From the NCBI GenBank assembly GCA_002269645.1, contig NIVC01000211.1, positions 372,001-436,000 on the forward strand: a DNA stretch of 64,000 bases, written 5' to 3'. This DNA comes from Macrostomum lignano (Eukaryota). The position numbers were made by a program, and so were the translations under genes. Within the stretch, counting starts at the first letter, position 1; the number at the start of each line of letters is the position of its first letter. The notes beneath the pieces were generated by a model that worked only from the letters and a program-made list of their open reading frames with translations, searched no databases and was not told the origin of the DNA. Shown one piece after another: positions 14,202 through 59,943 of this stretch.

Positions 14202-16479
14202 GGGTGCCAGTCAATTCGTCTGCTGAGCAGACGAACTGGCGGCAGGGTAAATCTCAAACACAAAAGTAAAAAATTTGACAAAAAATAAAAGTTCTGTGGC
14301 ATGCAAAATAATGCTTTACCTCTGAAGATTAAACAATAATATAATAATTTTTCTTCTTAAAACCACAAGTTGGCCTGAATTTCAAGAAAGAATGCTGTTT
14401 GTTTTTTCGAAGGGTATTCTGACAACGATTAATACCGAAGATTAACAGTTTGTTCATTTAACATATAAAATTGTAGTTTTTGTTTTTTTAGAGTTAAATT
14501 TCTATTGGTTTGTAGTATACACAAAATATTCTTTGTTTTTAAGCAACATTTTGTTATAAATTGAGGCTGTTTATAGTTACTTAATTTAACGTGCTAAGAA
14601 TCTGCCTGATTTAATATAAACGGAATATACGGTACCTAAACCATTTTTTATATATATATCGACAACATATCCCGTTGATGGACTGATAATGAACGGAGTT
14701 TATTATTGATGGCAATGAAACGATGCCAATTGGGTTATTTATTTTTACTAAAATTTAATATGGCGAAACCTACAAATTCTGTAATATTCAGACTGACACC
14801 GATGGATCATGGATCTAGTATTCAACTTGAACATATTTTCAAATATGATAACATTAGAGGAATATATTAAATACATTGGCAAAAACAAATTAGAATATTT
14901 CTATGGATTACCAAACATTAGAGCTCAAAATATACACATAAGATCAAAATTGAATATCATTACAAGCGAATTCATCAAAGATTTTCATACAAAAATAAAC
15001 AAACTGCTTACTTAAGTATGTTAGTTGGCTAAATGGTAAAAACCCATATAATGAACTTAATAAGGTCTATACTTCTTTAGTAAAATCACAAGAACATGCA
15101 ATAAAAAACTACTCTTTGTTTAGTATTTTTCTAAATAATAACAAGTTTTGGGAACATTTACATGCTTATGAGCAGAGTAAACTTACACCTTACAGGAAAT
15201 TTTGTGCTCATAAAAAAGTCAAAATGTAACATCAATAGGCATAAGTAAGTAACAATGCATTGACAGTCGCAGATAAAACAAAATAACAATATTTAAAATG
15301 TCTCTGAAAGAATGAATCACTAAAGATCAAAATGTTTGGCGTTGTTTATCAGAAAACCTACACCTTACAGGAATTTTTCAACAGTAGACAAGTGTCATGC
15401 AATTAAGACAGGGCTAAATAAGTTCATAAATATTGAAAACACAGCCGTAAAATATCCACAAGCTCACAGATAAAGGTTTTCCCCTATATTTTCAGTCATT
15501 GTCCCATAGACAAAAATAGTACACGTACACAAAAGAGCGTTATGAAACAAAAAAACGTACTTAAAGTACAAGTCAGAAAAATACGTTTTCGGCACCCGAG
15601 TGGCATCGATAAAAACCCGGACTAAAGGTACAAAAACGAGTGCATAAGATCGGGTAAATGCCATGTCATATGCCACGGTGACATGTCTTCTACCCAATTA
15701 AAAGCGGGCTTGTGTATAAATCCAATGAACTAATTTCGGCGCATAATTAAAATCGTTATTTTGCTGCTTTTAATATAGATCGATGGATTAGTTCAAACAG
15801 TGGAAAGAAGTTTCATTGATACTGCAATATTACTAGTTGCATTGCAAAGTGTAGAGTATTTAAATCAGAATGAGAACTGTTATCAGGGAACTGTCTATTT
15901 ATAATACCTTTAAACATTTAATAAAAGAAGGCCTAACCATCTATACAGGCCTATTATGTAGGGTATACTGTATATAGATCTTTTTAATTTATAAAGACCT
16001 ATCTTTGTTCATTTATTTTTAATCAATGCTAAGCCTCCACTATAATTATATGTTATTAAAATATATCATTATAAAATAGTTGGGCCCTATACTAGCTAGG
16101 GTTATACTTAGAGCTTGCAAATTTATATCAAATTTATATCCAACATTTTTCTAATCCTGATCTTTTTAGAAATTTAGCTTTTCTTTAGCTTAGTAAGTTA
16201 GTATTTTTAGAATAGATATAATTTTTTAGCCTTTATATATTTTTTTCAATTTAGTTTCTTTTCTAGCTAAATTCCTTATTTGAATTTTTAGTTTAAATTA
16301 ATCTTTAAAAGCTACTTTATCCTTAAGCCTAGCCTTAATTTGTCTAACAATATAGCTTTCCCTTATCTTAATCATAATCCTTTAAAGAATCTAGTAGCTC
16401 TATAACCCTAATCCTTTAAGTAATCTATCCTCTCTCTTATCTTAATCATCTAAGAAATTTAGCCACTTTCCTATCTCAA

Positions 16480-19400
16480 TCCTCTAGGAATTTAGCTGCT
16501 TTCTTATCTAAATCTTCTAGGGCATCTAGCCACTCCCAATTCCCAATCTTCTGGGGAATTCAGCCACCCTCCCTTCTCAATCCTCTAGGGAATCCAGCTG
16601 CTTTCTTATCCAGATCTTCTAAGGAATCCAGGCACTCCCCTTTCCCAATCCTCTGAATAATCTAGCTGCTTTCTTATCCAAATCCTTTAGGGAATCCAGC
16701 CACTTCTCTTTCCCAATCCTCTAGAAAATCCAGCCACTCCATTTTCCCAATCCTCTAGGAAATTTAGCTGCTTTTTTATCCAAATCCTCTAGAGAATCTA
16801 GCCACTCCTCTTTCCTAATCCTCTAGGGAATATAGCCCCTCCTCTTTACAAACCCTCTGCGGAATCTAGCCAATCCCCTTTCCTAATCCTTTGGGGAATC
16901 TAGCCACTCCCCTTCCCAATACTCTAGGGAATTTAGCTGCTTTCTTATCCAAATCCTCTAGGGAATCTAGCCACTCCCCTTTACAAATCTTTTAGGGAAT
17001 CCAGCCACTCCCCATTCCCAATCCTCTGGGGAATCTAGCCACTCCCCTTTCCTAATCCTCTGGGGAATCCAGCCACTCCCCTTTCCTAATCCTCTGGGGA
17101 ATCTAGCCACTCACCTTTCCTAATCCTTTGGGGAATCCAGCCACTCCCCTTTCCTAATCCTCTGGGGAATCCAGCCACTCACCTTTCCTAATCCTCTGGG
17201 GAATCTAGAGACTCCCCTTTCCTAATCCTCTGGGGAATCCAGAGACTCCCCTTTCCTAATCCTCTGGGGAATCCAGCCACTCCCCTTTCCTAATCCTCTG
17301 GGGAATCCAATCCAGCCACTCCCCATTCCCAATCCTCTGGGGAATCCAATCCAGCCACTCCCCTTTCCCAATCCTCTAGAAAATCCAGCCACTCCATTTT
17401 CCCAATCCTCTAGGAAATTTAGCTGCTTTTTTATCCAAATCCTCAAGAGAATCTAGCCACTCCCCTTTACAAATCTTTTAGGGAATCCAGCCACTCCCCT
17501 TTCCTAATCCTCTGGGGAATCCAGCCACTCACCTTTCCTAATCCTCTGGGGAATCCAGCCACTCACCTTTCCTAATCCTCTGGGGAATCCAGCCACTCCC
17601 CTTTCCCAATCCTCTAGGGAATCCAGCCACTCCCCTTTCCCAATCCTCTGGGGAATCAAGCCACGACCCTTTCCCAATCCTCTGGGGAATCAAGCCACGA
17701 CCCTTTCCCAATCCTCTGGGGAATCCAGCCACTCTTTTCCCAATCCTCTGGGGAATCCAGCCACTCCCCTTTCCTAATCCTCTGGGGAATCCAGCCACTC
17801 AACTTTCCTAATCCTCTGGGGAATCCAGAGACTCCCCTTTCCTAATCCTCTGGGGAATCCAGCCACTCCCCTTTCCTAATCCTCTGGGGAATCCAGCCAC
17901 TCCCCTTTCCTAATCCTCTGGGGAATCCAGCCACCCCTTTCCTAATCCTTTAGGGAATCCAGCCACTCCATTTTCCCAATCCTCTAGAAAATCCAGCCAC
18001 TCCATTTTCCCAATCCTCTAGGAAATTTAGCTGCTTTTTTATCCAAATCCTCTAGAGAATCTAGCCACTCCTCTTTCCTAATCCTCTAGGGAATATAGCC
18101 CCTCCTCTTTACAAACCCTCTGCGGAATCTAGCCAATCCCCTTTCCTAATCCTTTGGGGAATCTAGCCACTCCCCTTCCCAATACTCTAGGGAATTTAGC
18201 TGCTTTCTTGTCCAAATCCTCTAGGGAATCTAGCCACTCCCCTTTACAAATCTTTTAGGGAATCCAGCCACTCCCCATTCCCAATCCTCTGGGGAATCCA
18301 GCCACTCCCCTTTCCTAATCCTCTGGGGAATCCAGCCACTCCCCTTTCCTAATCCTTTGGGGAATCCAGCCACTCCCCTTTTCTAATCCTTTGGGGAATC
18401 CAGCCACTCCCCTTTCCTAATCCTCTGGGGAATCCAGCCACTCCCCATTCCCAATCCTCTGGGGAATCCAGCCACTCTTTTCCCAATCCTCTAGGGAATC
18501 CAGCCACTCTCCTTTCCTAATCCTCTGGGGAATCTAGCCACTTCTCTTTCCCAATCCTCTGGGGAATTTAGCTGCTTTCTTATCCAAATCCTCTAGGGAA
18601 TCCAGCCACTCCCCTTTCCCAATCCTCTGGGGAATCCAGCCACTCCCCTTTCCCAATCCTCTAGGGAATCCAGCCACTCTCCTTTCCTAATCCTCTGGGG
18701 AATCTAGCCACTTCTCTTTCCCAATCCTCTGGGGAATTTAGCTGCTTTCTTATCCAAATCCTCTAGGGAATCCAGCCACTCCCCTTTACAAATCCTCTGG
18801 GGAATCCAGCCACGCCCCTTTCCTAATCCTCTGGGGAATCCAGCCACTCCCCTTTCCTAATCCTCTGGGGAATCCAGCCACTCCCCTTTCCTAATCCTTT
18901 GGGGAATCCAGCCACTCCCCTTTTCTAATCCTTTGGGGAATCCAGCCACTCCCCTTTCCTAATCCTCTGGGGAATCCAGCCACTCCCCATTCCCAATCCT
19001 CTGGGGAATCCAGCCACTCTTTTCCCAATCCTCTGGGGAATCCAGCCACTCCCCTTTCCTAATCCTCTGGGGAATCCAGCCACTCCCCATTCCTAATCCT
19101 CTGGGGAATCCAGCCACTCCCCTTTCCTAATCCTCTGGGGAATCTAGCCACTCCCCTTTCCTAATCCTCTGGGGAATCCAGCCACTCCCCTTTCCCAATC
19201 CTCTGGGGAATCCAGCCACTCCCCTTTCCCAATCCTCTAGGGAATCCAGCCACTCTCCTTTCCTAATCCTCTGGGGAATCTAGCCACTTCTCTTTCCCAA
19301 TCCTCTGGGGAATTTAGCTGCTTTCTTATCCAAATCCTCTAGGGAATCCAGCCACTCCCCTTTCCCAATCCTCTGGGGAATCCAGCCACTCCCCTTTCCC

Positions 19401-19700
19401 AATCCTCTAGGGAATCCAGCCACTCTCCTTTCCTAATCCTCTGGGGAATCTAGCCACTTCTCTTTCCCAATCCTCTGGGGAATTTAGCTGCTTTCTTATC
19501 CAAATCCTCTAGGGAATCCAGCCACTCCCCTTTACAAATCCTCTGGGGAATCCAGCCACGCCCCTTTCCTAATCCTCTGGGGAATCCAGCCACTCCCCTT
19601 TCCTAATCCTCTGGGGAATCCAGCCACTTTCCTTTCCCAATCCTCTGGTGAGTCTAGCCACTCTTCTTTCCCAATTGTCTTAGGAATCCAGCCTGCAATA
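16480..19700 (+). repeat. 34-bp minisatellite array in left TIR (ggggaatccagccactcccctttcctaatcctct)
   Basis: Tandem array, increasingly C>T/G>A-degenerate toward 16480; inverted counterpart at 31090-33560. Confidence 0.95.
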
Positions 19701-19836
19701 TTATTCGTCGTTGGATCCAGCTTTTCCAGCATTTCTGCTTTGCTATCAACAGTTGTATTTAGCTGATAGTTTTTTCTTGCTAATTTGATTTAATTTATCT
19801 ACGCTGGTAAACTATCATATAATTTATTTTGCTTTC

Positions 19837-22800
19837 ATGGGCCGCTCAAAGAAGTATCTGAAGGTGCGAATCAACGGGCGCACAAGGCAGCTGTCTGGTG
19901 TAGGGAAAACGAGTGTCCTAAAACGAAGTCTCACAACCGCTCACGTGCTAGAAAGTAGTGGTGCAAGTGTCCCGGATGATTGTGAGACTGTTGTAAATTC
20001 TCATGTAGATGGCCCCAGTACTAGCGGAGTGCATTGTGACTGGGAAGATGTGAGTCCTAAAAACAGGCCTGAGATCCTTTCGGCCTTCTTGAAAGCTGTA
20101 GAGGTAGGAGTTTGTGCCCAATGTTTGAAAGTTGGCTCTGCATACTGTCCACAGTGTTCAGCATTTTTCTGTGATGAATGTGTCCGAACTCGTCATATTG
20201 GCCTTGTACATTCCGCGTACCAGGTAAATAATTAATTATCTTCAATTCATTCAAAAATATTCTATTCAATTCATTAATCCTCTACGATTGAGTGAGCACA
20301 TTTTTAAGAGACATAAAATTTCAGAATCGAGAGCCTCTTGACCTAAGTATCAAGTTTGCGTGTGGCTGCACGCCTGGCTCATCATTAAAAGTGACGCTTT
20401 TGGACGCTTTTGGAGGAAAGTTATTTTTACCTTCTATTGTGGCACGAACTAAAATAACTAATTAATCAAATCTTGTATCCTGCAAAGTTTGCTTTTGGAA
20501 ATCTACTAACCTTAATTGTTCTACTTAATGTACCTCTCCTTGTAGGTTACCATTCGGCCATTATCGATGCTTGTGCTAGTTGTCATTGTACTGAATTTCT
20601 CGTTGCTCGTAACTATTTTCCTTTGTCCGACCGTACTTCAGTCTTCGCATCTTTCGAACTGTTGAACAGTTTAGATTCCATCATGATACACGGAATTACA
20701 TCATTATCGAAGGCTTGTACCATCCTTCAGAACAGAAGAATCGTTTTTGGCCAGCGACCGAACGTAATTTCTTTAGTCTAACTTTTTAATGAGCGGAATC
20801 AATTTTAAATTAGACTTTTAGATTATCAATTCACGATGAACCATTAGGTCAATTCTACCATTCCTCCCTCGAATGGCAAATGTATTACTACAATCCAGTG
20901 GAGTGAGACAGTGCAGTAAAAATAATTGAAGCCCAACATACTCGTAAACCTTTTATTTTTACTCTAAGGGCTCTTAGAGTAAAATGTTTAGAGTAAGATG
21001 TTTCAAAAATGTTTTTATTAATTTACTGCAGCGGGATCTGTACTATGACCTTCGACGAAACAACACCCTCGGCCTGTATCGAGAATTTTTAGCTGAAGTC
21101 GCACAATTTCCTTCTGTGTGCACTTTATGCCGATCGAAAGATTTGGTGAGACAAAGATGAATGCTTTGTGATGAAATTTTTAATGTGAAGAGCTTTTCAT
21201 TTATCAGAAATATTACTGTCTTTGACTTAGGGACCCATCCTGCACGGCGACGCCCTAATGGGGTGGAGGCGTCGAGCTGCTGTAGGAGCGGAGATTTTCC
21301 AGGACCCTCTGGACGCAGATCTGCCGTTTCCGTTTGCGCGTGTTGATCTGTCTGGACAAGCCATTGCACCTGCACGCGGCGCTTGCCCGAACTGGACTGC
21401 AGGAGAAACATCTTACATTTGTCGTGCATCCTCAAAGCTGGACGTCAAAGGCTTTTTTATTGTTGCCTGTCGCCATGGGTTTATCTGGTCGTGCTCTGAT
21501 GTGCGCACTCCTGGAGAGCGGTGTGTTTATATGTGTTTTTTTTATTTATTGTGCCTTCACGGTAAGAAATGACTAACAGAATATTTTTGGCTCTTTTTAC
21601 TGATGCAAATCAGCTTCTTTTTTTCTACATTTAGTCTCATCTACCCTACAACTCTACTGCGAGCAGCAGTGCAACGTCTTGGCGTCCAGGAGGAGTCCGT
21701 GACGTTTGTGTATGATGTCGCGTGTAAAATTGGAAGCAAAGTGAAATCAAAGCTTGCTGTGCCGGTTTTTCACGCTTATGGCCACGAGTCTAAATGCCGT
21801 GTAAGTTCAGCTAGAAGTGTTTCTTGGTTATTTAAAATAATCATCTCACGGGTTCACTCATGCTAGGTGATGCTAGGTGATAGTAGGTTAATGCGTATTG
21901 CGTACAGTATTTATATTTCGCAATAAATCCATAAAACTCAAGTAGTTGTTAAACGTATGGTCGTATTTCTATAATGTAATGAGTAATAATTACTTAATAA
22001 TTTCCTTCCAATTTAGCTGAACAACTCAATCCGCGTTACCTCTGGAACTGGCATCACCGACGGCGAGATCTGCGAACGCATTTTTTCGTTTTTACGTCCC
22101 TACGGGCGCATATTAAAAGAGATGCGGATCGACCGGCGCACCAGACTCATCGCACATATCATTGGGATGTATCATCTGCGTTTGGATTTCGGTTAGCTAG
22201 CCAATAACAATTTTTTGTCTGCCGCTTTACAAAAGTGACGTGTCAATGTCTAGCTGTCCAATTTTTTATTTCATTCTGACGAGTATGTTAATTTTTCCAC
22301 AGAGTCGTGGCTGGTATCGAGAGATAAGCTTCTTTCAAAGAAAAAGTATCTGATTGATCAGAAAGTTCGTGAAGTTCGACAGCTCGTACCACAAGCAGGT
22401 TAGTTGATGCATATGCAGCGTTTGGATGTTACCGTTTATCTCTTCGCGTACTCATTTCATAAATGAAACGAGTATAAACTCAAATTTCGTATGCGTAGAT
22501 GCTGAAATTACTACTAATTACCAAAATTTTAGACTTCACCTACCAGCAGTTGCTGCAATTAGGTGAACAATGGCTTCGCGAAGATGCACATGCGGCTACT
22601 CAGCGAACCAGCGATTGGCTTCAAAAGATGCGCCGGCTTGCAGTCGAGAAGCGGCAGGCCTTGAACGCACTTAATAGATGCATTGGTAAATCACATCGCG
22701 TAATATATACGAGTACTTATAAATTCAGTGTCAAAACCTTTTTTGCCATCTTATCATCTATCCAAATCAGTATCATTAATTTGCGTAAATGCTAAATTTT

Positions 22801-23165
22801 ACCCACCAGGTTCGCACCAGAGTCGTCTGCTGACGCGCAAAGTTGATGTACTACGCACAGAAATGAAGAAAGTGCTCGAATCCAGCGGAAGCCAGTATAC
22901 ATTGAAGGAGCTGGAAAACGCTTCGTCGGCGATATACTCCCGTCTTGATAACCACACCATCCGGCCTTTTCCTCTCGCTGTGCAGCTTGCGGCTATTGAA
23001 ATTTTCACCACTTCTATTCGCTCAACAGAAGAAGTCCAGCGGGTCAATGCGGAACGAGATTCTCTAGCTCGATTTAACTCATTTAGGTTGCCCATTACAG
23101 AGGTCTGCAGCAACAAAAGTTCCGACTGCTCGGGCTCATCTTCATCGGAGGACGAACTTGATTGA
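19837..23165 (+). pseudogene. Spliced KDZ-family transposase with N-terminal Cys/His zinc clusters (B-box-like, CxC-like); apparent lesions
   Basis: Exons approx. 19837-20223, 20325-20415, 20546-20763, 20814-20902, 21032-21145, 21231-21520, 21635-21800, 22017-~22166, ~22302-22388, ~22531-22686, 22810-23165. Motifs ILHGDALMG (D), LDVKGFFIVACRHG...GER, FVYDVAC (D), PVFHAYGHESKC, GTGITDGEICERIFS (E), KEM..R match KDZ transposases. Apparent frameshifts near 21085 and 22040 and a GA donor at 20416. Confidence 0.85.
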
Positions 23166-24348
23166 TAACTAAAGTGCATCAGCAACTTTGGTACATTTTG
23201 ATAACTTTTCAACCATGCTTATTTGTAAAAAAAAGTCGTATTCAATTGTTTGTTCAATTACTGAACTACAATATTGCTTAACTTTTTGCTGAGTGTTGCG
23301 ATTTATATTGTATTTGTGGGGTCTAGTAACTTAACTAAGTTATGCTAAGATGCCCCAGGAAAAGTAAGGATAGTTCTGATTGCATTAATTGGGGTCAGGG
23401 TCGGTCGGGTTTTGGTACCGGGTTCGGGGTTTAAAAACATTTTCGTACAAAAAATAAGTATGCATAGTAATGACTGTCCCAGTCTCTCACCACACATCAG
23501 CTGAGCATTTTTTCACCATCTGCCCCGCATTTATGCGAGCCATCTTAGCATTACTTACGAGCTACACTTGGCCTATGTACACAAATGATATCAGTTTCTG
23601 CCATCATTATGACTTATTTCCGCTTCCTACAATGTAATGTGCTACTCATTTTAAGTGACAAAGCAGAGAAAGCCTCATGCATCATTTCAATGCCTGTAAT
23701 TTATTTTTGTATATTTTTACTTGTTCTTGTTCTCCTTTTGTATAGTTTTTACTTTCAAGATGAGATCAGACCACACATCTGTTCTTGTAATATTTAACGA
23801 TCCGCACAAGCAAGCGTGACATAAAGAGCAAGTAAGTTTTTCTTTGTGTCAATTTAAACAAAAAAATACTAATATCTATATGCATGTTTAATTAAATTAC
23901 ATTAAGCAACGAATTTCTGCTGTTTTACTAGGAGTATAAATACGAATTACTTTATCAAGAGAAATTTTTCAAGTTTCGCCTTCGCGTAGTGCACGGTTTT
24001 TTGCATCTTATTTGCAAACTTTTGAGAAAGAAAGGGTCTGTCAATTTAAGCTCATAAAGTGGAGCCCGAGTAACATGTAACATGTCGATCGAGTACTGAT
24101 CAAGCGACATTGAAACAGTCCGCTCCTTTTTGCCAATATGATCAAGGACCTTAATCGCACCCTTATCGGCTGTACGTGTAAATTTTCATACGGCTGAATG
24201 CAGATAATGTTACATGACTTACTTGCAATACATGTAGGAGCGTACATGCAGTGTACATGTAAGTCTGCAGGCTACGCACCCACGCTGACAGCATTTTGTC
24301 AATCGATATGGACACTCAGCAAATGAAGTTAGAACCCCCCCCCCGAAC

Positions 24349-25728
24349 AATAAGTTTCCGGATGTGCCCAGACAGAAATAGTTAGAGAAAAAAACAGTTA
24401 CATCTTTTCAAAGTACTCTTCAGCAGATTCGATGCAAATTTTCATGCGCCTAAATCACTTGCTGAAGCAGCTGGACCAATCTGAAGCAGGCACCTTCTCC
24501 ACATGCAGGGTGAAGGCCTCCAGTCCACGCAGCTTTGGTGATCCATAGCGGATTCCACGCATGGCCTGCACTTGATTTGTGGAAGCACAAAGAAGTCGCA
24601 GGGGGCCAGGTCGGGGCTGTAGGGTGGATGACCGAGCTCTTGAATGCGCTCTCCGGCTAGGAACTCCGCCACCTGTCGAGCCTTGTGGGCCGGGGCGTTG
24701 TTGAGATGGAGAAGGATGCCCCGAGCTCGAGTCCTTGGGCGACGCCTGGAGAGAGCGCTCAGCACTTCTGGCAGGCAAACGTTGGCGTACCAGTCACTGG
24801 TAACTGTGCGCTGCTGCACGAGTGGAACCGCGTGGCCAGATGACCGGTTTTCGCCACAAAAACGGCCACCATCTGCTTCGCCACGCTGCGCGATCTCGAC
24901 GAGCTTGGATGGTGGGGTGCCGCTAACTGGAGTCCGCTGGGCCGACTGCTGCTTAGTCTCCGGGTTGAAACTATAGATCCAGGACTCGTCACCACTGACG
25001 ATATCCCAGACCAAGTTTGAGCTGCCTCCGTTGAATCTGTCGAGCATGGTGCGGCACCAGGTCACCCGAGCCTCCTGCTCCGGAGCCAGCTGATGAGGCA
25101 CCCAGCGTGCAGAAATCTTGCTCAGGTTGAGCTGTGAATATAGGATCGTCCTGATGAATCCTGATGAGATGCCCACCTCTGTCTCTATCTGGGCCACAGT
25201 CACTCGGGCATCATTCTCAACCATGGCCCGGACAGCAGCAACATTATCCTCGGTCGTTGCGGAGACAGGCTGTCCTCGGTCGTTGCGGAGACAGGCTGTC
25301 CTCGGTCGTTGCGGAGACAGGCTGTCCTCGGTCGTTGCGGAGACAGGCTGGCCGCTGCGCTCCTCATCATCCAGACTCTGCCTGCCACGTCGAAATTCGG
25401 CAAACTAGTCAAAAACGGTGGATCTAGAAGGTGCTTCATCCCCAAAAATCCTCGCAATCGCTCAAGACTTTCTTGCTGCCGCAAACCACTTTTAAAATCG
25501 TAATAAATCATTGCTCTAAAATGACTCCTATTGAGCTCCATTGTGAATTCGATAGATAAGGGTGGGTATTCTAGCTTGGTTTGGGTGCTGCACTGGCTAT
25601 ATATGACCAGTTTGTCTGAAACTTTACAAACATTGTACTTTATAAATGTACTTGACACCTATATGGTGTCAGATTTTGTCAGCCGCCTCTCAACTATGCA
25701 CATCCGGAAACTTATTACTCAGCCCTCG
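24349..25728 (-). mobile_element. Mariner (DD34D) element with decayed transposase, inserted in the KDZ element
   Basis: MELNRSHFRAMIYYDFKSG start, ARWVPH, SGDESW, LHLNNAPAH (D>N) and YSPDLAPCDF. 5' TIR tacgagggctgagtaataagtttccggatgtg; partial 3' TIR aataagtttccggatgtg at 24349. Internal 26-bp tandem duplication near 25240-25345 and frameshifts. Confidence 0.9.
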
Positions 25729-26269
25729 TACGTACAAAATCATCAATCTAAACTCAATTTCATCGTCACCGGGCTCCTGGTTGATAGAGAGGGTTCGCTA
25801 TCCAGCATTGTGCAGCTCCATGACCAACAGTCGCTCTGATGCAATGAGGTGTATGCCTCCTCGACAGTCCGGTAAGGCTCTAACCCTGACCCCTTACCCT
25901 ATTCTTTTTCGAGTTTGTGATGGCCCCCTTTCGCGTCGGTCTATTTGAAAATATTGCGATACAGAGGATAGTTTAGGTTGTAGGCTAGACAAACCTACAA
26001 TTGAAGATTTTAAAACCATTGAGTCCTATTTGCCTATGGCCGGTCGGCGAGTCCTACCAAGCTTTCTCTAATGTCGCAGGTACTGTATACAAGTAAATGA
26101 ATAACACGGTTGAACACAATTCCAGATACTCGTAGATCTAGATTGAGTGATAATCCTATTCTGATAGAACGGCTGATAATGATAGTAGGCTTTAACCCGT
26201 GTATTCGCGATTAACTTGAAATTTACACAGGTTTGATATAGCATTTTGCACTCTGTTTGAGATAAGAAG

Positions 26270-26460
26270 ATGCACAGTTTGGTCATTGAAGCTTTGGACA
26301 GAGGTGAGCGGCCGGTCGATCGCGAAATGGACCAAGATTAACGTCAAGACAGTTATACCAATTAAACGTCGGTATGAAGTGTATGAAGAGGACACTTACG
26401 GCCTGACAGTTCAGCGAGTCCCTGGCCGCTCCTGACTAAACCGCGCTTGCTGACAAACTC
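26270..26460 (+). pseudogene. Degenerate Tc1-like transposase N-terminal HTH remnant
   Basis: With one frameshift reads HSLVIEALDRGERPVD-AKWTKINVKTVIPIKRRYE...VQRVPGRS, similar in pattern to Tc1/Tc3 paired-like HTH; no catalytic region seen. Confidence 0.4.
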
Positions 26461-26822
26461 TGAACGAGGTCGCCGCGAATGTTACGGCGGCAAGACTACT
26501 GCGGTCGGGCAACGGAAAAAGAAATGAACCGGGGCTCGAACTCGATAAGCGCCTCAAAGCGCGACAGGTGACAAAGCGACCGGGGGATGAACAAGGGGCC
26601 GCGGAAAGGAGAGAAGTGAGACAGATCCGATTTTTGCCAAAAACAGTTTCCTAGACATTTATGACCAAGGAAACCATGCAGTAGTATTACATTAAATACA
26701 TAATAATGCCGCTCCCCGCGCGTGATGCCAGTTGCGTTACTTGCAATTCCGATCAGAGAAAAATTGAGATCACTAGCTAAAGGTGGAATATACTTTTCAA
26801 TTCTCAGCAGTGTGTATATATA

Positions 26823-27060
26823 CTCAGCAACAGCTAAACCCCCCCCCCCAACTCACGCTGTCACACGGCCCAAAAGTTTTGTATGCCATCGGTGATTCAG
26901 AAATGTGTGAAGGCTGCCGCCGCCAGACGCGAGCGCAAAATGCGGCATGGGGGATTTGGGGAGGGGGTGGCGCAACTCAACCCAGTGGTGGGAATTAAAG
27001 ACTGCTTAACTTTTGTGCCCGTGTGACAGCGTGAGTTGGGGGGGGTTAGCTGTTGCTGAG
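26823..27060. mobile_element. 238-bp MITE with ~55-bp TIRs and TA TSD (Tc1/mariner-type)
   Basis: ctcagcaacagctaa(c)n aactcacgctgtcacacgg at 26823 and its inverse ending 27060, each flanked by TA. Confidence 0.85.
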
Positions 27061-28394
27061 TATATGTAATAGTGCTCCGGATTTTCAACCGCAGGGGCAG
27101 AATGGGCATAATTTCTCGCTACGGATTTTTTCCCTGGAGGTAACGATGCGCGGCAAAACAGCCATAGCCTAAGAGGGCATGGCACCGCCCTAATGTCTCT
27201 ACTGTTGAGTCGAAGTAGGGCCCTGCGGAGGGCGGAAGGACAGGGGACAGCCGGGCGGGATTACTGGCCGTCGGGGTGTTACTTAAAGTACACAAGGAAG
27301 CTTCAAAATCTTCAGTGCTCATAGTGCATCATCAGCCACGCTAAACTTTATACAGATAATAAAGGCCTAGGATTTCGCCTATTGTTGCTTTTTCAAATGT
27401 TGGGCCTGTTGCGTGGGGGGTTGGGCGTGTGCTTTTACTCCGCGTATCGTTTGTGATTTTATTCCTGTGCGTGCGCTCTTTGTCTGGGCTCACGCTCTTT
27501 GCACGTCTCTGCTCTATCGTGACTTTAATGTACACTGTTGGTGTTTTAGCCCTTGGGTTGAGGGGCTGCTATGGAACCTCGCTTATAATAAATCGTATCG
27601 TATGTCAGTGCACTTGGCACTTTCGTCTCGCCTCGCAAACTTTTGGCTCTCGATTTGCACTGACTAACATCTACGATAACTGATATTTCAAATAACTGAA
27701 AGTAAAAGTATCAATACCTCACATTTAACGAATCACCAACAAGCTGGAAAATGTCTAGATGTTGCTCATTCTTCGTCTTCAAAGATTTGGACGCAACTAT
27801 AACAAATATTTATTTACGACGCTTTTAAAATGCTGCCGATTCTTAAGGCGCCAAAGAGCACACGTAAATATATTTTAAAAGCAAAGTACAGGAAAAAACC
27901 TGCATTATAATTGAACACTGTAGCTCATGAGAACGAATTTGAATCGAGCATTACGAGCTACATGAAAGTATAAGAAAGGGTGCTTATTTTGAGGCGTATG
28001 CCGTTGAATTAAAAATGGATGGTGAAAATGGATGGTAAAAATGGTAAAAAGACCTTGATTTTTTCACTGTAAAATTTCAAAGCAGTGAATAAATAAGCTA
28101 GCAATTTAAACTGGGACACCTCTGATCTTTTGAAAATAAGCGCATCCGTTGACAGAAATTGATTTTGCTTCTAATATATATTTTTTGCCATAGGCTTGCT
28201 AGCAATATATTATTTAATCAAATCCTGCTCCTTTTCGAATGGTTACGCAGAGATAAATTTAATTCAATTATTTTGATATTTCACAAGTGGTTTAATACGA
28301 GCTACTCGTACGAATTCAAAGCACTTAATTTTTTCAGATTCTTTTGCAACCATAAAACAAATTACATCTCGGAAACTTCTCGCTTCTCTCCTGG

Positions 28395-30961
28395 TCACTT
28401 TAAAATTTTAATAAGAACTTGAGATTGTGATGTACTACCGACTTTGATGTTTGCAGAATGACCAGCCGCACCGGCTGGCCGAGGACCGGTATATGTAATT
28501 CGAAAGGCTGGACGATGACCGACGGCGCTGCCCGGCAGAGTAGCAATGTCACCGGCAGGACGATGACCGACGGCGCTGCCCGGCAGAGTAGCAATGCCAC
28601 CGGCAGGACGATGACCGACGGCGCTGCCTGGCAGAGTAGCAATGTCACCGGCAGGACGATGACCGACGGCGCTGCCCGGCAGAGTAGCAATGCCACCGGC
28701 AGGACGATGACCGACGGCGCTGCCCGGCAGAGTAGCAATGCCACCGGCAGGACGATGACTGACGGCGCTGCCCGGCAGAGTAGCAATGCCACCGGCAGGA
28801 CGATGACCGACGGCGCTGCCCGGCAGAGTAGCAATGTCACCGGCAGGACGATGACCGACGGCGCTGCCCGGCAGAGTAGCAATGCCACCGGCAGGACGAT
28901 GACCGACGGCGCTGCCCGGCAGAGTAGCAATGCCACCGGCAGGACGATGACCGACGGCGCTGCCCGGCAGAGTAGCAATGTCACCGGCAGGACGATGACC
29001 GACGGCGCTGCCCGGCAGAGTAGCAATGCCACCGGCAGGACGATGACCGACGGCGCTGCCCGGCAGAGTAGCAATGTCACCGGCAGGACGATGACCGACG
29101 GCGCTGCCCGGCAGAGTAGCAATGTCACCGGCAGGACGATGACCGACGGCGCTGCCCGGCAGAGTAGCAATGTCACCGGCAGGACGATGACCGACGGCGC
29201 TGCCCGGCAGAGTAGCAATGCCACCGGCAGGACGATGACCGACGGCGCTGCCCGGCAGAGTAGCAATGTCACCGGCAGGACGATGACCGACGGCGCTGCC
29301 CGGCAGAGTAGCAATGCCACCGGCAGGACGATGACCGACAGCATCATCAACATTCTCTACGGGTGTATCGGAGACGGCATTATCCTCGAGATGACCGAGG
29401 TCAGCAGCACTGGCTCGATGGGGAATAAACTTTAATTTATCCCGCGAATCATACAACTCCCGCAGCTCCGTGTAATTCATTAGTGCAGGGCGTTTAATAC
29501 TCGGAAAAAAACTGCCGCCGAGGTTGTTGAAGTTCAACTTGGCGCCCATTCCGGCTTGAGCTGTGAAAAAAGTAAGTAAACAGATACATAAGTATAAATA
29601 TATATAAATTTGAAAAAATGGATTACTTTTTAAAGCAGCCTACAGGTGGGGGGGGGGGCGTAGCCCAGCGGTAGCGCAGCTGCTCTGGTGTGCCAGCGAC
29701 CCAGGCTCGATTCCAAGTGCAGTCACATTAATTTGGTGCTGAATTGGAATCAAGGCTTGGCTCTGCTCGTGCAATTAACGACCTTGAGAGCCAACCCCCC
29801 AAGTCGCAGTGAAGTGTACATGCCTAACGATAATATAAAGTTAGGGCCGCTGTACACTCCTGTGTGAGTGTGTGCCTGCGTATGTATCCGCGCGCTTGTA
29901 TGCCTGCTCAGGGGAGTCGGCGGAATGGGCAGCAATGCCTCTCGCCGGTTGTGTGCCTCTGTCGCTTAAAGTGCGCCAGGGTGCACGCAACCCCCCTGCC
30001 TTTGATAAAAAAATAAAAAAGCAACCTACAGACCTAAATGTGAGATTTTCTCTTTCCCTTTAGACTTAAATTATCTAAAATTTAGCACAAGTGGGTCTGA
30101 AAAATACTATGAAAAAAATACATAATTAATTCACCATATGCCATGCGAACAGATGCGCGAACTTCTTTACGCATATGCTCAACCGTCGGTTTTTGAGCCG
30201 ACGACTGTGCTAGTCCGGTGGAAAGTAATTCAAATTTCTGCAATGGTAGAGAACAAATACCATTACATTACATTAGTCATTACATCTATTAAGCTTTAAG
30301 GCCTTTTATCTCAAAATTGCAATTGTATGTAATTGCATCAAAACAATTGCATGACAAGAAACATTAGCTTACTTGAAGAACTCCAATATTGTCATTTAAA
30401 ATTCCTGCGACTTCAGGAGAAGCACAAGTGCGAATATTGGAGCCGCTGCGACTCTTCGTGATAATAATGATATGATAGTCGGCAAACATTAGACGTGCCT
30501 GCAAGTGATTAAGCGAATTTATTCATTTACGCTCAGGCGGTACTACCACACAGTCTGTCAGTCTGGACAAGTACAAAATTTAAAATTAAACTTTGGTGCA
30601 CAGTATGCAATTCAATGTAGTTACCAAATCCTCCAATGTATGCACCGAGGGAGTTTGCTGAACTTTTTCTCGTGCAGCACGTTCGTACACAGATTTTTCT
30701 TCAGCAGTTAGACTTTTAAATTTGTCGCTTAAAAAAGCCATGCGTTCCTTGGAAAAGTTATCTGAAAAAATTATCCGAAATAATTGTAGATCATTACTCC
30801 ATTTAAAACAAAAAAGTATAACTTACGAAAAAGAAACAAACACTGAAGTTCAAAGCAAAAAAGCCAAACAAAATCTTACTTGTTCCCATTGTCTTCAAAA
30901 ACATGGACCAGGCACTGGTCTTTCTTGGGCGCGAACGAAAACTTCGGCACTTTTTTTTCAT
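28395..30961 (-). CDS. HMG-box protein with a long 16-aa-repeat C-terminal region (5 exons: 30961-30880, 30761-30625, 30498-30373, 30237-30135, 29560-28395; ~537 aa)
   Basis: All four introns GT-AG with matching phases 1,0,0,1 and no stops. Spliced N-terminus MKKKCRSFRSRPRKTSAWSMFLKTMGTNNFSKERMAFLSDKFKSLTAEEKSVYERAARE follows the HMG-box pattern (PRKPxSAYxLF...L..EEK..YE..A). Confidence 0.8.
28510..29340. repeat. 48-bp tandem repeat (~17 units) encoding AVGHRPAG(G/D)IATLPGS within the HMG gene
   Basis: Unit gacgatgaccgacggcgctgcccggcagagtagcaatg(c/t)caccggcag; in frame with the last HMG exon. Confidence 0.95.
29657..30020 (+). mobile_element. tRNA-derived SINE, family 2, copy B (in intron 4 of the HMG gene)
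   Basis: Head ggcgtagcccagcggtagcg...ccaggctcgattcc (A/B boxes), body shared with 6050-6347, A-rich tail near 30005-30020. Confidence 0.8.
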
Positions 30962-31089
30962 GCTTAAAAATAGCAGAAAATTGAATTGAAGACAAATAAA
31001 CCATACAATTATTATAAAACATGATTTCCTTAAATGAATAAAAAGGAAAGTGGAAATATAAAAGGATGGAGATAAGGAATATAATTGTT

Positions 31090-33560
31090 AGACGTTTGAT
31101 TCTCCCAAAGGATTACGATAGGAGAGTGGCTGAATTCCCTGGAGGAATGGGATGGGAGAGAGGCTTGATTCCTCAAAGGATTGGGAAAGGGGACTGACTG
31201 GATTCCCTAGAGGATTGGGAAAGGGGAGTGGCTGGATTCCCCAGAGGATTGGGAAAGAGAAGTGGCTGGATTCCCCAGAGGATTAGGAAAGGGGAGTGGC
31301 TGGATTCCCCAGAGGATTAGGAAAGGGGAGTGGCTGGATTCCCCAAAGGATTAGGAAAGGAGAGTGGCTGGATTCCCCAGAGGATTGGAAAAGGGGAGCG
31401 GCTGGATTCCCTAGAGGATTGGGTAAAGAGTGGCTGGATTCCCCAGAGGATTGGGAATGGGGAGTGGCTGGATTCCCTAGAGGATTGGGAAAGAGAAGTG
31501 GCTGGATTCCCCAGAGGATTGGGTAAAGAGTGGCTGAATTCCCTGGAGGAATGGGATGGGAGAGAGGCTTGATTCCTCAAAGGATTGGGAAAGGGGAGTG
31601 GCTGGATTCCCCAGAGGATTGGGAAAGAGAAGTGGCTGGATTCCCCAGAGGATTGGGAAAGGGGAGTGGCTGGATTCCCCAGAGGATTAGGAAAGGGGCG
31701 TGGCTGGATTCCCCAGAGGATTTGTAAAGGGGAGTGGCTAGATTCCCTAGAGGATTTGGAAAGGGGAGTGGCTGGATTCCCCAGAGGATTGGGAATGGGG
31801 AGTGGCTGGATTCCCCAGAGGATTTGGATAAGAAAGCAGATAAATTCCCCAGAGGATTGGGAAAGAGAAGTGGCTGGATTCCCCAGAGGATTAGGAGAGG
31901 GGAGTGGCTGGATTCCCCAGAGGATTAGGAGAGGGGAGTGGCTGGATTCCCCAGAGGATTTGGATAAGAAAGCAGCTAAATTCCCCCGAGGATTGGGAAA
32001 GAGAAGTGGGTGGATTCCTTAGAAGATTTGTAAAGGGGAGTGGCTAGATTCCCTAGAGGATTTGGAAAGGGGAGTGGCTGGATTCCCCAGAGGATTGGGA
32101 ATGGGGAGTGGCTGGATTCCCTAAAAGATTTGTAAAGGGGAGTGGCTAGATTCCCTAGAGGATTTGGATAAGAAAGCAGCTAAATTCCCCAGAGGATTGG
32201 GAAAGAGAAGTGGGTGGATTCCCCAGAGGATTAGGAAAGGGGAGTGGCTGGATTCCCCAGAGGATTGGGAAAGGGGAGTGGCTGGATTCCCCAGAGGATT
32301 GGGAAAGGGGAGTGGCTAGATTCCCCAGAGGATTGGGAAAGGGGAGTGGCTGGATTCCCCAGAGGATTAGGAAAGGTGAGTGGCTGGATTCCCCAGAGGA
32401 TTAGGAAAGGTGAGTGGCTGGATTCCCCAGAGGATTAGGAAAGGGGAGTGGCTGGATTCCCTAAAAGATTTGTAAAGGGGAGTGGCTAGATTCTCTTGAG
32501 GATTTGGATAAAAAAGCAGCTAAATTTCCTAGAGGATTGGGAAAATGGAGTGGCTAGATTCCCCAAAGGATTAGGAAAGGTGAGTGGCTGGATTCCCCAG
32601 AGGATTAGGAAAGGTGAGTGGCTGGATTCCCCAGAGGATTAGGAAAGGGGAGTGGCTGGATTCCCTAAAAGATTTGTAAAGGGGAGTGGCTAGATTCTCT
32701 AGAGGATTTGGATAAAAAAGCAGCTAAATTTCCTAGAGGATTGGGAAAATGGAGTGGCTGGATTTTCTAGAGGATTGGGAAAGGGGAGTGGCTGGATTGG
32801 ATTCCCCAGAGGATTGGGAATGGGGAGTGGCTGGATTGGATTCCCCAAAGGATTAGGAAAGGGGAGTGGCTGGATTCCCCAGAGGATTAGGAAAGGGGAG
32901 TGGCTGGATTCCCCAAAGGATTAGGAAAGGTGAGTGGCTAGATTCCCCAGAGGATTAGGAAAGGGGAGTGGCTGGATTCCCCAGAGGATTAGGAAAGGGG
33001 AGTGGCTAGATTCCCCAGAGGATTGGGAATGGGGAGTGGCTGGATTCCCTAAAAGATTTGTAAAGGGGAGTGGCTAGATTCCCTAGAGGATTTGGATAAG
33101 AAAGCAGCTAAATTCCCTAGAGTATTGGGAAGGGGAGTGGCTAGATTCCCCAAAGGATTAGGAAAGGGGATTGGCTAGATTCCGCAGAGGGTTTGTAAAG
33201 AGGAGGGGCTATATTCCCTAGAGGATTAGGAAAGAGGAGTGGCTAGATTCTCTAGAGGATTTGGATAAAAAAGCAGCTAAATTTCCTAGAGGATTGGGAA
33301 AATGGAGTGGCTGGATTTTCTAGAGGATTGGGAAAGAGAAGTGGCTGGATTCCCTAAAGGATTTGGATAAGAAAGCAGCTAGATTATTCAGAGGATTGGG
33401 AAAGGGGAGTGCCTGGATTCCTTAGAAGATCTGGATAAGAAAGCAGCTGGATTCCCTAGAGGATTGAGAAGGGAGGGTGGCTGAATTCCCCAGAAGATTG
33501 GGAATTGGGAGTGGCTAGATGCCCTAGAAGATTTAGATAAGAAAGCAGCTAAATTCCTAG
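31090..33560 (-). repeat. 34-bp minisatellite array in right TIR (inverted relative to 16480-19700)
   Basis: agaggattaggaaaggggagtggctggattcccc units. Distinctive variants (e.g. ggctggattggattcc) appear mirrored in both arms. Confidence 0.95.
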
Positions 33561-34655
33561 AGGATTGAGATAGGAAAGTGGCTAAATTTCTTAGATGATT
33601 AAGATAAGAGAGAGGATAGATTACTTAAAGGATTAGGGTTATAGAGCTACTAGATTCTTTAAAGGATTATGATTAAGATAAGGGAAAGCTATATTGTTAG
33701 ACAAATTAAGGCTAGGCTTAAGGATAAAGTAGCTTTTAAAGATTAATTTAAACTAAAAATTCAAATAAGGAATTTAGCTAGAAAAGAAACTAAATTGAAA
33801 AAAATATATAAAGGCTAAAAAATTATATCTATTCTAAAAATACTAACTTACTAAGCTAAAGAAAAGCTAAATTTCTAAAAAGATCAGGATTAGAAAAATG
33901 TTGGATATAAATTTGATATAAATTTGCAAGCTCTAAGTATAACCCTAGCTAGTATAGGGCCCAACTATTTTATAATGATATATTTTAATAACATATAATT
34001 ATAGTGGAGGCTTAGCATTGATTAAAAATAAATGAACAAAGATAGGTCTTTATAAATTAAAAAGATCTATATACAGTATACCCTACATAATAGGCCTGTA
34101 TAGATGGTTAGGCCTTCTTTTATTAAATGTTTAAAGGTATTATAAATAGACAGTTCCCTGATAACAGTTCTCATTCTGATTTAAATACTCTACACTTTGC
34201 AATGCAACTAGTAATATTGCAGTATCAATGAAACTTCTTTCCACTGTTTGAACTAATCCATCGATCTATATTAAAAGCAGCAAAATAACGATTTTAATTA
34301 TGCGCCGAAATTAGTTCATTGGATTTATACACAAGCCCGCTTTTAATTGGGTAGAAGACATGTCACCGTGGCATATGACATGGCATTTACCCGATCTTAT
34401 GCACTCGTTTTTGTACCTTTAGTCCGGGTTTTTATCGATGCCACTCGGGTGGTTTTCGGTCGCTATCGCCACGATAAAAGCATAAGCTCTGGCTAAAAGT
34501 TTAAAGACACATTTTTCAATCAGTTTTTTATAAATAAAAGTTCAATTTATGTACAAATACTTCTGGTTTAACAATTAAATTCATGCTGAAAGAAAAAATT
34601 TGTTTATAACTTACGTATATTTCAATTTGAGATTTACCCGGCAGACGAATTGACT

Positions 34656-42586: not shown

Positions 42587-45500
42587 ATGGTTGGCAGCTG
42601 CACTAACTTCGACTCTGTAGAAGACGAGAAGAGTTCACATCGTCAGGATTTAAGCACGCTATCAGACTCTGCTGCCAATGAAGAGCTGTCTTCTAAAGCT
42701 ACCGATAATGATGCTACTGCAACGGAAAATATGGATGCTGAAGCCGGCTCTAATGCCAATACAGTCTCCGGTTTTGATTCTCCAACAGCCGAAGGATCCA
42801 GTGATGGAGATACATCGATAGAATCTTCCTTAATCTCTGTCCCAGCCTCCGTGTTGCCTTCTCCATCCTCTTCATCATCTTCGACAGCATCATCAACTGC
42901 TTCTACATCGAAACAGTCGTTAGTGACATTTCCGAATAGTTTAGATTGTAGCTCTGTAGGGCCAGAGTCTCATGAAGACCAGGCTCTGTTCGATGTGATT
43001 ATCATTGGTGCCGGAGTGTCCGGTTTAGCGGCTGCTCAGATGCTGCACAAAGCCGGTCTGAGATGCGTTGTACTCGAGGCTCGAGATCGGATTGGTGGCA
43101 GGATTCACACTATCGAACTGCCAGCTAGCGCAGAGCACGGTCTGCCATCCGTTTCAGTTGATTTGGGTGCCAACTATTTGCATGGCTGCTCAAATTCTCA
43201 GCTGGAACAGCCGCTGTTTCATTTGGCTAGGTGGGTGATGTGCGGGTCTTGTAGTTGATTACTTCATTGGTTAGCTCTGTAAATAAATATTCGCTGGGTT
43301 GGTTTGTGGGTTTTCGGTTACGTCTTCCTATCACCCGGCGCTGAAACAATTCCGTCCATTTCTTAGACTCCTGTCGTGTGATTCAAAACCCATGAGAGCC
43401 AACCCACAAGGCACAAAGAGGGTAATTTGCCTGACAGGAGTGGAAATTCAAAGGCCGCTCTGTACACCCCATATGAGCAGCGGGGCACATGGGGGACATG
43501 CTCCCAGTAAAAGGTATGGGGGGCATGCCTTTGCTTTGGCTCCATAGCCCCACCTCGACCTCACCTTGTGACCCGTTGTGGAAGTTGAAATTTTGCTTCA
43601 GGGCGCCAAAATATAGCGCTGTCAGCGCTAAAGTATGTTTTTAGCGCTAAAATGAGTGCCTGCGGCGCCAAAATAAATGCCTGCGGGGCTAAAATGAGTG
43701 CCTGCGGCGCCAAAATAAATGCCTGTGGCGCCAAAATGAGTGCCTGCAGCGCTAAAATGAGTGCCTGCGGTGCCAAAATGAGTGCCAGCAGCGCTAAAAT
43801 GAGTGCCTGCAGCGCCAAAATGAGTGCCTGCGGCGCCAAAATGAGTGCCTGCGGCGCCAAAATGAGTGCCTGCAGCGCCAAAATGAGTGCCTGCAGCGCT
43901 AAAATGAGTGCCTGCAGCGCCAAAATGAGTGCCTGCGGCGCCAAAATGAGTGCCTGCGGCGCCAAAATGAGTGCCTGCAGCGCTAAAATGAGTGCCTGCA
44001 GCGCTAAAATGAGTGCCTGCGGCGCCAAAATGAGTGCCTGCAGCGCCAAAATGAGTGCCTGCAGCGCCAAAATGAGTGCCTGCAGCGCTAAAATGAGTGC
44101 CTGCAGCGCCAAAATGAGTGCCTGCGGCGCCAAAATGAGTGCCCGCGGCGCCAAAATGAGTGCCTGCGGCGCCAAAATGAGTGCCTGCAGCGCCAAAATG
44201 AGTGCCTGCAGCGCTAAAATGAGTGCCTGCAGCGCCAAAATGAGTGCCTGCGGCGCCAAAATGAGTGCCCGCGGCGCCAAAATGAGTGCCTGCGGCGCCA
44301 AAATGACTTACTGCGGCGCCAAAATGAGTTACTGCGGCGCCAAAATGAGTTACTGCGGCGCCAAAATGAGTGCTAACAACACTTATGTTCGTATTTCCAA
44401 AATAGTTGTAGGAATATAGTCGTGTGTGGAATACTTGGCTTTGTCCTCAATATTTCATCAATTTTACATTTTAACAATCAATCCACAGGCATTTAAAAGT
44501 GCAAACCTGCGTAGCCCCAGCCGATCTGGGCGACAAATATCGCGGCTGGGAGTCAGCCGAAGTGGCCGTCTGGCGAGATTTGGACAGTGGCAATGAGATT
44601 CCATTGGAAACTGTGGCTGATGTCTGCTTTCTGTTTGATCAGTGCCTGATGCACTGCTTGGCCTCGGTTAGGAGGCTGAGAAATCCCGCTTGGGTGCCGC
44701 TACAGTCCGTGTTTCGCGCTTCGACTCGGTGAGTTCTGAACGTTTTTTTAGGATGTAGTGTTCTATTCAGTCATGATCTTCAGATCTTAATGCTGGCACC
44801 CATTTTACAGCTGGGTGAACTGAAGCAATGCATAGTTAGGTGTCTTACTCAAGGACACAAATTGTTCCGAGTGGGTCAGGAATCGAACCCCCGACCTTTC
44901 AGTTGTGAGTCCGCCGCTCTCACCACTAGGCTACAACCCCTTACCTATCTATCTACCTACCTACCTATCTGCCTACCTGCGTATCTCCCTACCTATCCAC
45001 TTACCTATCTACCTACCGATCTACCTATCTACCTGCCTGTCTACCTACCTGCGTATCTACCTATCGATCTACCTACGTGTCCATCTACCTACCTCTCTGT
45101 CTACCTACCTACCTACCTATCTACCTACCTACCTACCTATCTACCTACCTACCTACCTATCGACCTACCTACCTACGTAACTACTACCTCCTTACATATC
45201 TGCTTACCTACCTACCTACCTAACTACCTAATAGGTGCCCATATTGCCGCCAATGGTGTGCAATCTACGAGGGGTTAAAGAGATGAATATATACTACACA
45301 TTATATGATAGCTTTACCTTTCTCCATAAGGTAGACAAATAGAAATTGTTTTATCAAGTGCTCCCAATTGCATTTGAATTTAAGATCATTTTTAATTTAA
45401 GAAATTTAATAACATTTCATATCTATAACTTTGTAAGTTACCTGATTTCAGCGCCATACTAAAGATGCACTGTCAAAACGGCCGCCGACCAAACCAGTTA

Positions 45501-52775: not shown

Positions 52776-52897
52776 CATACCAATCATCATAAAAATGATT
52801 CACTTTGATATTGACAAATAATTGTTTAATAAATTGTGTATTTCAATAATTCCATCCAATCGCTTACTGTGTTGCATGCCATCTCCAACAGACAGGC

Positions 52898-59885: not shown

Positions 59886-59943
<58 letters not shown>

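Follow-up and report, generated by a model that had tools for sequence, protein, structure and literature searches.

The DNA analysed here (the window; 64,000 nucleotides) corresponds to C211:372001-436000 of a 764-Mb assembly of the flatworm Macrostomum lignano, the host being identified by a protein match of 100%; positions given without a contig name refer to the window. It contains a mobile element of the KDZ (Kyakuja-Dileera-Zisupton) group of DNA transposons, 18,859 bp in length (15593-34451, + strand), bounded by inverted termini and a target-site duplication of 8 bp. The left terminus, CACCCGAGTGG (15593-15603), has its exact reverse complement, CCACTCGGGTG, at the right end (34441-34451). 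The ends read CACCC...GGGTG, and the terminal 10-mer fits the near-palindrome CACYCGRGTG. Immediately outside lies the duplicated target GTTTTCGG, at 15585-15592 on the left and 34452-34459 on the right. The arms of the perfect terminal inverted repeat (TIR), at 15593-17205 (+ strand) and 32839-34451 (- strand), are each 1613 nt long and 100% complementary to one another. Each consists of about 0.9 kb of unique sequence followed by units of a 34-bp satellite, the first of which fall within the perfect TIR, giving an arm length of 1.6 kb if only the perfect repeat is counted and 3.4-4.1 kb with the satellites. The left subterminal array (16511-19693, + strand) holds 93.6 copies in a single orientation, and the right array (31098-33533, - strand) 71.5 copies, all opposite to those on the left; within the 64-kb window the 34-bp unit has no occurrence outside these two arrays. 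Two genes lie just inside the arrays and face inward, in convergent orientation. A sequence-only reading of the window had claimed exact inverted termini with an 8-bp duplication, arms mirrored over kilobases and satellite-built ends in an invertebrate genome, and each of these features is present as described.

Gene 1 (19837-23165, + strand) encodes the transposase. Its spliced model has 10 exons (19837-20223, 20325-20415, 20546-20763, 21032-21145, 21231-21520, 21635-21800, 22017-22191, 22303-22398, 22533-22685, and 22810-23165) and yields a protein of 681 amino acids, of which the C-terminal 476 are identical to the annotated BOX15_Mlig007828g2; searching the contigs for an exact copy of this annotated protein gave no match. 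The protein scores 103.6 bits (E=1.6e-29) against the Pfam KDZ model (PF18758), well clear of the cut-off of 26.6, and single exons also match. This agrees with the KDZ assignment made from sequence alone, as does the presence, in the spliced product of a multi-exon gene, of every motif quoted there as a KDZ context for a D..D..E triad (ILHGDALMG, ACRHGF, TPGER, VYDVACK, FHAYGH, and TDGEICER). The putative catalytic residues of a DDE-type transposase are D277 in ILHGDALMG (codon 21249-21251, + strand), D394 in VYDVACK (21714-21716, + strand) and E439 in TDGEICER (22065-22067, + strand). These three, together with C350-R351-H352, H413 and H417, are invariant in an alignment of 14 KDZ sequences made up of four diverged flatworm proteins and ten KDZ proteins from a database search, eight of them from named fungi. 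Toward the N-terminus the protein has a B-box-like C2C2C2H2 zinc finger (C93..H125), a sub-threshold Pfam match, followed by a candidate CxC cluster at C142..C174 (CGC...CxxCHC). The protein itself has no CxC Pfam match at E<=0.01, and an M. lignano relative, P0006, matches CxC2/CxC1 below threshold. Neither SWIM nor CxC4 gave a Pfam match in the 681-residue protein or in its M. lignano relatives. An AlphaFold2 model has a predicted local distance difference test score (pLDDT) of 72, with a core above 85, and shows the beta-beta-beta-alpha-beta order expected for an RNase H-like core, with D277 on a beta-strand and D394 at the end of one.

Gene 2 (28395-30961, - strand) encodes an accessory protein of 537 amino acids in five exons (30961-30880, 30761-30625, 30498-30373, 30237-30135, and 29560-28395), all joined in frame across GT-AG introns. 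Exons 1-4 are reproduced by UniProt entry A0A1I8G5N0, and the exon 4-5 join is supported by a relative, A0A1I8J7S5, with 63% identity. From N- to C-terminus the protein comprises an HMG-box-like region, a conserved middle region and a repeat tail, the last of which, a 17-fold repeat of the 16-residue unit AVGHRPAGG/DIATLPGS, is encoded by a 48-bp tandem repeat of 17.4 copies (28506-29339, - strand). The N-terminus (RPRKTSAWSMF...KFKSLTAEEKSVYERAA) resembles an HMG box, and the UniProt match carries the automatic name 'HMG box domain-containing protein'. Alignment by hhalign to approximate HMG-box references gave a probability of 73% over 30 columns. An AlphaFold2 model built from three sequences has an overall pLDDT of only 50 and places three helices at residues 26-71 (pLDDT 62-78). 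The protein is probably an HMG-box-like, DNA-binding one, judging by these resemblances. A candidate tRNA-derived SINE head in intron 4 (29650-29800, + strand, GGGCGTAGCCCAGCGGTAGCGC...) was called by neither ARAGORN nor Rfam and was rejected.

The element is not confined to this locus. The first 908 bp of the arm are 100% identical at seven termini on four contigs. Besides the full copy in the window, flanked by GTTTTCGG / GTTTTCGG, a second copy at C38:490550-514202 has the same internal structure and lies between GCGCCACC / GCGCCACC, again an 8-bp duplication; a scaffold gap breaks it up, and a 4-kb stretch is duplicated there. A third, at C269:636597-652165, has flanks TTTTATTG / TTTATTGC and a 7-bp duplication, TTTATTG. 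It lacks the segment corresponding to 27811-31102 of the window, which takes in the whole of gene 2 and reaches to where the right array begins on its inner side, and may be an internal-deletion derivative of the kind common among cut-and-paste elements. C356 carries a solo left end of 1754 bp with left flank TTTTTTAG. An older subfamily (C993, C1198, C1199, and C1971) has arms about 93-95% identical to these; its transposase gene is lost and its gene 2 pseudogenised, and the sequences on either side point to a duplication of 7 bp, AATTATG.

Each of the three main copies has at least one empty counterpart in the genome. The insertion in the window splits a 935-bp high-copy repeat (left part 14838-15592, right part 34460-34639), and the joined flanks, with a single GTTTTCGG, are found uninterrupted at more than 30 other loci, with identities as high as 100%. 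Empty paralogues of the C269 site read ATTATTTTATTGCACG, which implies either a 7-bp duplication or an 8-bp duplication from which one T has been lost, and an empty paralogue of the C38 site lies on C143 (C143:410029-410336). The copies differ very little: across 12.2 kb, C211 and C269 are free of substitutions and are told apart by two gap openings, and the 3.6-kb gene 1 region is 100% identical across all three copies, which implies that the insertions are extremely young. Further copies in the genome carry duplications of their own, of 7-8 bp. The length is 8 bp at C211 and C38 and 7 bp at C269 and in the approximately 95% subfamily.

Several observations concern the surroundings of these copies. 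At C38:514203-514217, the C38 copy, whose duplication is GCGCCACC, proves to have landed within a related element that was already in place, 4 bp in from the CACCCGAGTGG terminus of the latter; the choice of site may be a coincidence or may reflect a liking of the family for ends of its own kind. Isolated terminal fragments of 115-150 bp, 95-97% identical, occur at C822:106764, C267:293340, C1763:88717, and C2527:42240 with no partner end within 1.5 kb, and may be truncated copies or remnants. In the transposase-less older copy at C993:95731-110039, the two flanks mirror each other at 99-100% identity over about 430 bp, compared with 91% for its own arms, which may reflect an inverted duplication or a misassembly. 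The 935-bp repeat that holds the insertion in the window has sharp boundaries and at least 34 copies, ten of which were fetched and are about 99% identical; it is probably a young non-autonomous transposon itself.

The layout of the element recurs in two sister lineages within M. lignano, one represented by C1651 and C105 and the other by C42, C1211, C1176 and C4148, whose transposases are about 76% and 47-70% identical, respectively, to the C211 protein. In both, a homologue of gene 2 (38-63% identity) with the same five-exon structure stands convergent to the KDZ gene, and the inward-facing pair is bracketed by inverted satellite arrays built from different units. In the C42-type lineage the left units are of the CCTCCTTGC type and the right units of the AGGAGGGTA type, and the last exon of the accessory gene contains an 18-bp repeat in 46 copies. 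The C1651 lineage has left units of the CTCCCATTC type, right units of the GAATGGGAGG type, and a 36-bp repeat in 10 copies in the same exon. The two-gene-plus-arrays layout is thus conserved across these M. lignano lineages, which speaks for arrays and a second gene that belong integrally to the element and co-evolve within it. The separate, convergent second gene proposed in the sequence-only reading is accordingly a real gene, with five exons, GT-AG introns throughout and conservation in other lineages.

A profile search returned 3602 proteins at E<=0.001. The closest relatives belong to further M. lignano clusters, and the next are uncharacterised proteins of Branchiostoma, Astyanax, Priapulus, Lytechinus, Apostichopus, Pecten and Tubulanus. 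Those tested, from Branchiostoma and Astyanax, combine a B-box-like finger, CxC2/CxC1 and KDZ, with CxC above the Pfam cut-off. Fungal proteins with CxC1 and KDZ, some with Ulp1, are more distant. A quick maximum-likelihood tree took in the M. lignano clusters, other animals and fungal CxC1/Ulp1 proteins. It unites the nine M. lignano clusters in a single clade (SH-aLRT 98), places the other animals as the sister group (92) and separates the clade from the fungal CxC1/Ulp1 sequences. A group of 'uncharacterised proteins' spread across the animals, from amphioxus, echinoderms, scallop, nemertean, priapulid and cavefish, is hereby shown to be a clade of KDZ transposases. The KDZ genes of Branchiostoma lanceolatum and Tubulanus polymorphus each adjoin a gene whose product matches the Pfam domains GTF2I and Chromo; it could be another accessory gene, of the amphioxus and nemertean lineages, or an unrelated transposon.

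KDZ elements have been recorded in fish, lancelets, sea stars, mussels and nematodes (PMC9297572), with duplications of 7 bp in Kyakuja and 8 bp in Zisupton and termini of the form CA..TG (PMC12730594). The C211 family, with its 7-8-bp duplications and CA..TG termini, falls within these values. Giant, multi-gene, recently mobile KDZ elements have been reported from Cryptococcus, Ectocarpus and Chlamydomonas, and among them the combination of accessory genes with fixed nested transposons has already been described (bioRxiv 10.1101/2024.08.15.608186; PMC12477816). The M. lignano element is therefore not a new kind, giant multi-gene KDZ elements being known already from fungi and algae. It shares with those of Cryptococcus (KDZ1-3, KDZx1), Ectocarpus (KDZ-1_Ec32) and Chlamydomonas, which range from 6 to 31 kb, the KDZ transposase, large size, extra genes, fixed nested transposons and recent mobility, as well as TIRs and 8-bp duplications where these are reported. 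It differs from them in its flatworm host, in its 1.6-kb perfect arms (3.4-4.1 kb with satellites), in the B-box-like plus CxC-like N-terminus of its transposase, and in its accessory gene. The latter appears to encode an HMG-box-like, tandem-repeat protein and is conserved across sister lineages, whereas the accessory genes of the other giant elements are TET/JBP, ParB-methyltransferase and an open reading frame of unknown function. What is unusual here is the conserved accessory gene and the satellite-arm architecture of a flatworm KDZ element, and the earlier proposal of a distinct, bounded animal KDZ family with a separate accessory gene is upheld by the boundaries, the further copies and the conservation of gene 2. 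In the literature searched, no paper presents a KDZ or Zisupton element of Macrostomum among its findings, the only one to contain both words having each of them a single time, and no account of a DNA transposon that encodes its own HMG-box cofactor came to light.

With Zisupton, known from Xiphophorus, other fish and fungi, the element has in common the KDZ domain, a multi-exon gene, TIRs and an 8-bp duplication (PMC12730594; PMC9297572). The canonical Zisupton transposase, however, is CxC4 + KDZ + SWIM (bioRxiv 10.1101/2024.08.15.608186) and Zisupton-type proteins reach 1300-1400 amino acids (PMC9297572; PMC12477816), as against 681 residues with no SWIM or CxC4 match, two insertions with 7-bp duplications and a separate second gene in M. 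lignano. The label 'Zisupton-type', applied to the element at the outset, finds no support in the domain architecture: its transposase has a B-box-like N-terminus and an apparent CxC cluster, as in the animal-wide CxC1/CxC2+KDZ clade. The element is a KDZ member but not demonstrably a Zisupton. It resembles the Kyakuja and Dileera elements of basidiomycetes in the KDZ domain and in an apparent CxC1/CxC2-type cluster, CxC1/CxC2 being carried by its nearest fungal matches, and Kyakuja in particular in CA..TG termini and 7-bp duplications (PMC12730594). Fungal Kyakuja elements differ in having no TIRs and often TET/JBP genes, and many of the fungal relatives have a C-terminal Ulp1 protease. The 1613-bp perfect TIR and the 8-bp duplication at two verified insertions set the family apart from Kyakuja, which is defined by 7-bp duplications and the lack of TIRs.

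Other systems offer partial parallels. CACTA (En-Spm) elements encode a TnpD transposase and a DNA-binding protein, TnpA, and have CAC... termini and subterminal repeat arrays thought to be bound by TnpA. On paper the likeness is close, with two element-encoded proteins, CAC... termini and subterminal arrays on both sides, but CACTA elements have a transposase of another family, make 3-bp duplications and produce both proteins from one alternatively spliced unit. Membership in CACTA was rejected on the 7-8-bp duplication, the CACCC termini and a transposase that matches the KDZ domain only. Kilobase TIRs composed largely of tandem repeats are a feature of Foldback/Galileo-type elements. Long-TIR MULEs likewise have kilobase TIRs built largely of tandem repeats (PMC3310237). 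Both Galileo (P-like) and MULEs (Mutator) differ from the M. lignano element in their transposases and duplication lengths. As for the accessory protein, the host protein HMGB1 is a cofactor of Sleeping Beauty and of RAG1/2, bending DNA so that the DDE recombinase can synapse the ends. The connection between HMG-box host factors and Sleeping Beauty has been treated elsewhere (bioRxiv 10.1101/2020.06.15.145656). HMGB1 is a host factor, whereas the probable HMG-box protein described here is encoded by the element.

We regard it as very probable that the element is a currently or very recently active cut-and-paste KDZ transposon of M. lignano. The gene 1 transposase, with its B-box-like finger, putative CxC cluster and KDZ core (D277/D394/E439), would recognise the CACCCGAGTGG termini, excise the element and reinsert it by cutting the target with a stagger of 8 bp or, in some cases, 7 bp. 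The gene 2 protein, which is lineage-specific, most likely binds or bends subterminal DNA and may help to assemble or regulate the transposition complex, as TnpA does in CACTA or host HMGB1 elsewhere. A more specific proposal is that M. lignano harbours a flatworm-specific KDZ branch, active today, with a two-component system of its own, in which a transposase, perhaps throttled by a conserved non-canonical GA-AG intron, works with an HMG-box/tandem-repeat protein that co-evolves with the satellite arms and builds the synaptic complex on them. This we offer tentatively, as less likely than not.

Some results weigh against the main interpretation of the element, and alternatives have to be considered. 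The Foldseek search of the transposase model against PDB gave no significant match (the best being Mos1, E=0.67). The apparent boundary of intron 2 of gene 1 (20416-20545, + strand) is GA-AG (GGAG/GAAAGT ... tgtag/GT): this is the sole in-frame junction of exons 2 and 3 and requires a GA donor, the other eight introns of the gene being GT-AG. No public gene model joins these exons, the annotated models either beginning downstream at MIHGITSL or skipping exons 2 and 3. Canonical alternatives, joining AA/GT at 20419 or ATT/GT at 20438 with an acceptor at 20487, were rejected; they break the frame or put about 30 non-conserved hydrophobic residues into the cysteine cluster. At the identical position and phase the C42-type lineage has a canonical GGAG/GTGAGA. 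A change of donor from GT to GA could therefore have blocked production of the full-length transposase and left the family non-autonomous, its copies being mobilised in trans by a related KDZ lineage, of which the genome holds many; giant KDZ families of Ectocarpus often have pseudogenised transposases and are thought to be mobile in trans (PMC12477816). Against such a loss, GA is common to the C1651 lineage, at about 51-96% amino acid identity exon by exon, and all 10 exons are open here despite that divergence, with the other eight introns canonical. Exon 3 is also conserved at the protein level ahead of the annotated start (68% over 72 amino acids), and donor positions +3 to +6 (AAGT) agree fully with the consensus, as they do in those rare GA-AG introns that undergo splicing. 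We think it unlikely, then, that the family depends on a relative for its transposase. Intron 2 may be either a tolerated non-canonical intron or a splicing defect; we take it to be spliced, and a rare non-canonical boundary of this kind could hold down the output of transposase.

The remaining doubts concern gene 2 and the assembly itself. The HMG-box-like domain of gene 2 scores 14.5-18.3 bits against PF00505 and PF09011, below their cut-offs of 22.4 and 25.4, two relatives of the protein have no Pfam match, and phmmer and hmmsearch comparisons with PDB sequences gave no relevant match. Foldseek of the low-confidence gene 2 model against PDB returned nothing informative, and with sub-threshold Pfam scores and uninformative structure tests the HMG-box call stays provisional. 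The C269 copy is without gene 2 yet inserted at its own site, so that gene 2 is not needed in cis, and a search within 10 kb of the amphioxus, nemertean and scallop KDZ genes detected no accessory homologue. The absence from C269 and from the surroundings of non-flatworm relatives, together with the weak assignment of the DNA-binding domain, would fit a gene that was captured or merely hitch-hikes and plays no part in transposition, either cargo or a regulator acting on the host, and additional, unrelated genes are frequent in giant transposons, KDZ elements among them (bioRxiv 10.1101/2024.08.15.608186; PMC12477816). Nevertheless, position, convergent orientation and the five exons persist across three lineages that share only about 47-76% identity between their transposases, and where the C42-type copy can be aligned its frame is open. 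All homologues of gene 2 found in the genome at E<=1e-3 either lie in or near KDZ-type elements or are decayed fragments, and its UniProt matches are M. lignano entries only. A factor that the element encodes and that co-evolves with it explains this better than a single capture event, and we consider a gene 2 without a role in transposition unlikely. Finally, the mirrored arms might come from a folded-back assembly, or ordinary host genes might lie within a local inverted duplication. Arms that are 100% identical can be produced by chimeric long reads, and the inverted flanks at C993 and the gap with its duplicated 4-kb segment in C38 also point that way. The 18.9-kb structure, however, is present at three separate loci, each with its own flanks and direct duplication, one of them as an internal-deletion derivative (C269), and precise empty sites exist. 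Empty sites with a single target copy exclude an assembly fold-back, so that the element is genuine and this last explanation is extremely improbable.

The element also carries passengers. A mariner-like element is nested in it at 24353-25712 (- strand; 1360 bp), with TIRs of 15 bp or more, TA/TA flanks and a DDE_3 match; its transposase is frameshifted at a perfect 26-bp tandem repeat of four copies (25247-25350) and is thus defective. It is present in all three copies, in a stretch that is 99.98% identical to C269 and about 99.7% to C38, and being common to all of them it travels with the element. A palindromic, MITE-like insert of about 250 bp, made of inverted pairs, lies at 26815-27068. 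Giant Ectocarpus KDZ elements show the same pattern of nested passengers (PMC12477816). Elsewhere the window is packed with minisatellites (43644-49499, 50622-54335, 56630-57752, 58388-60081, and 60717-63783). One pair of these (56630-57752 and 58388-60081), purine-rich and then pyrimidine-rich with extreme GC and AT skew, may represent the arms of another inverted-array element.

M. lignano is a model for regeneration and germline biology with an extremely repeat-rich genome. Three copies without base substitutions between them make the element a candidate source of ongoing mutation and of structural variation between laboratory lines, and it may also serve as a large-cargo genetic tool. KDZ transposition has hardly been studied biochemically, and the clean ends, the compact 681-residue transposase and the conserved candidate cofactor make this element experimentally tractable.

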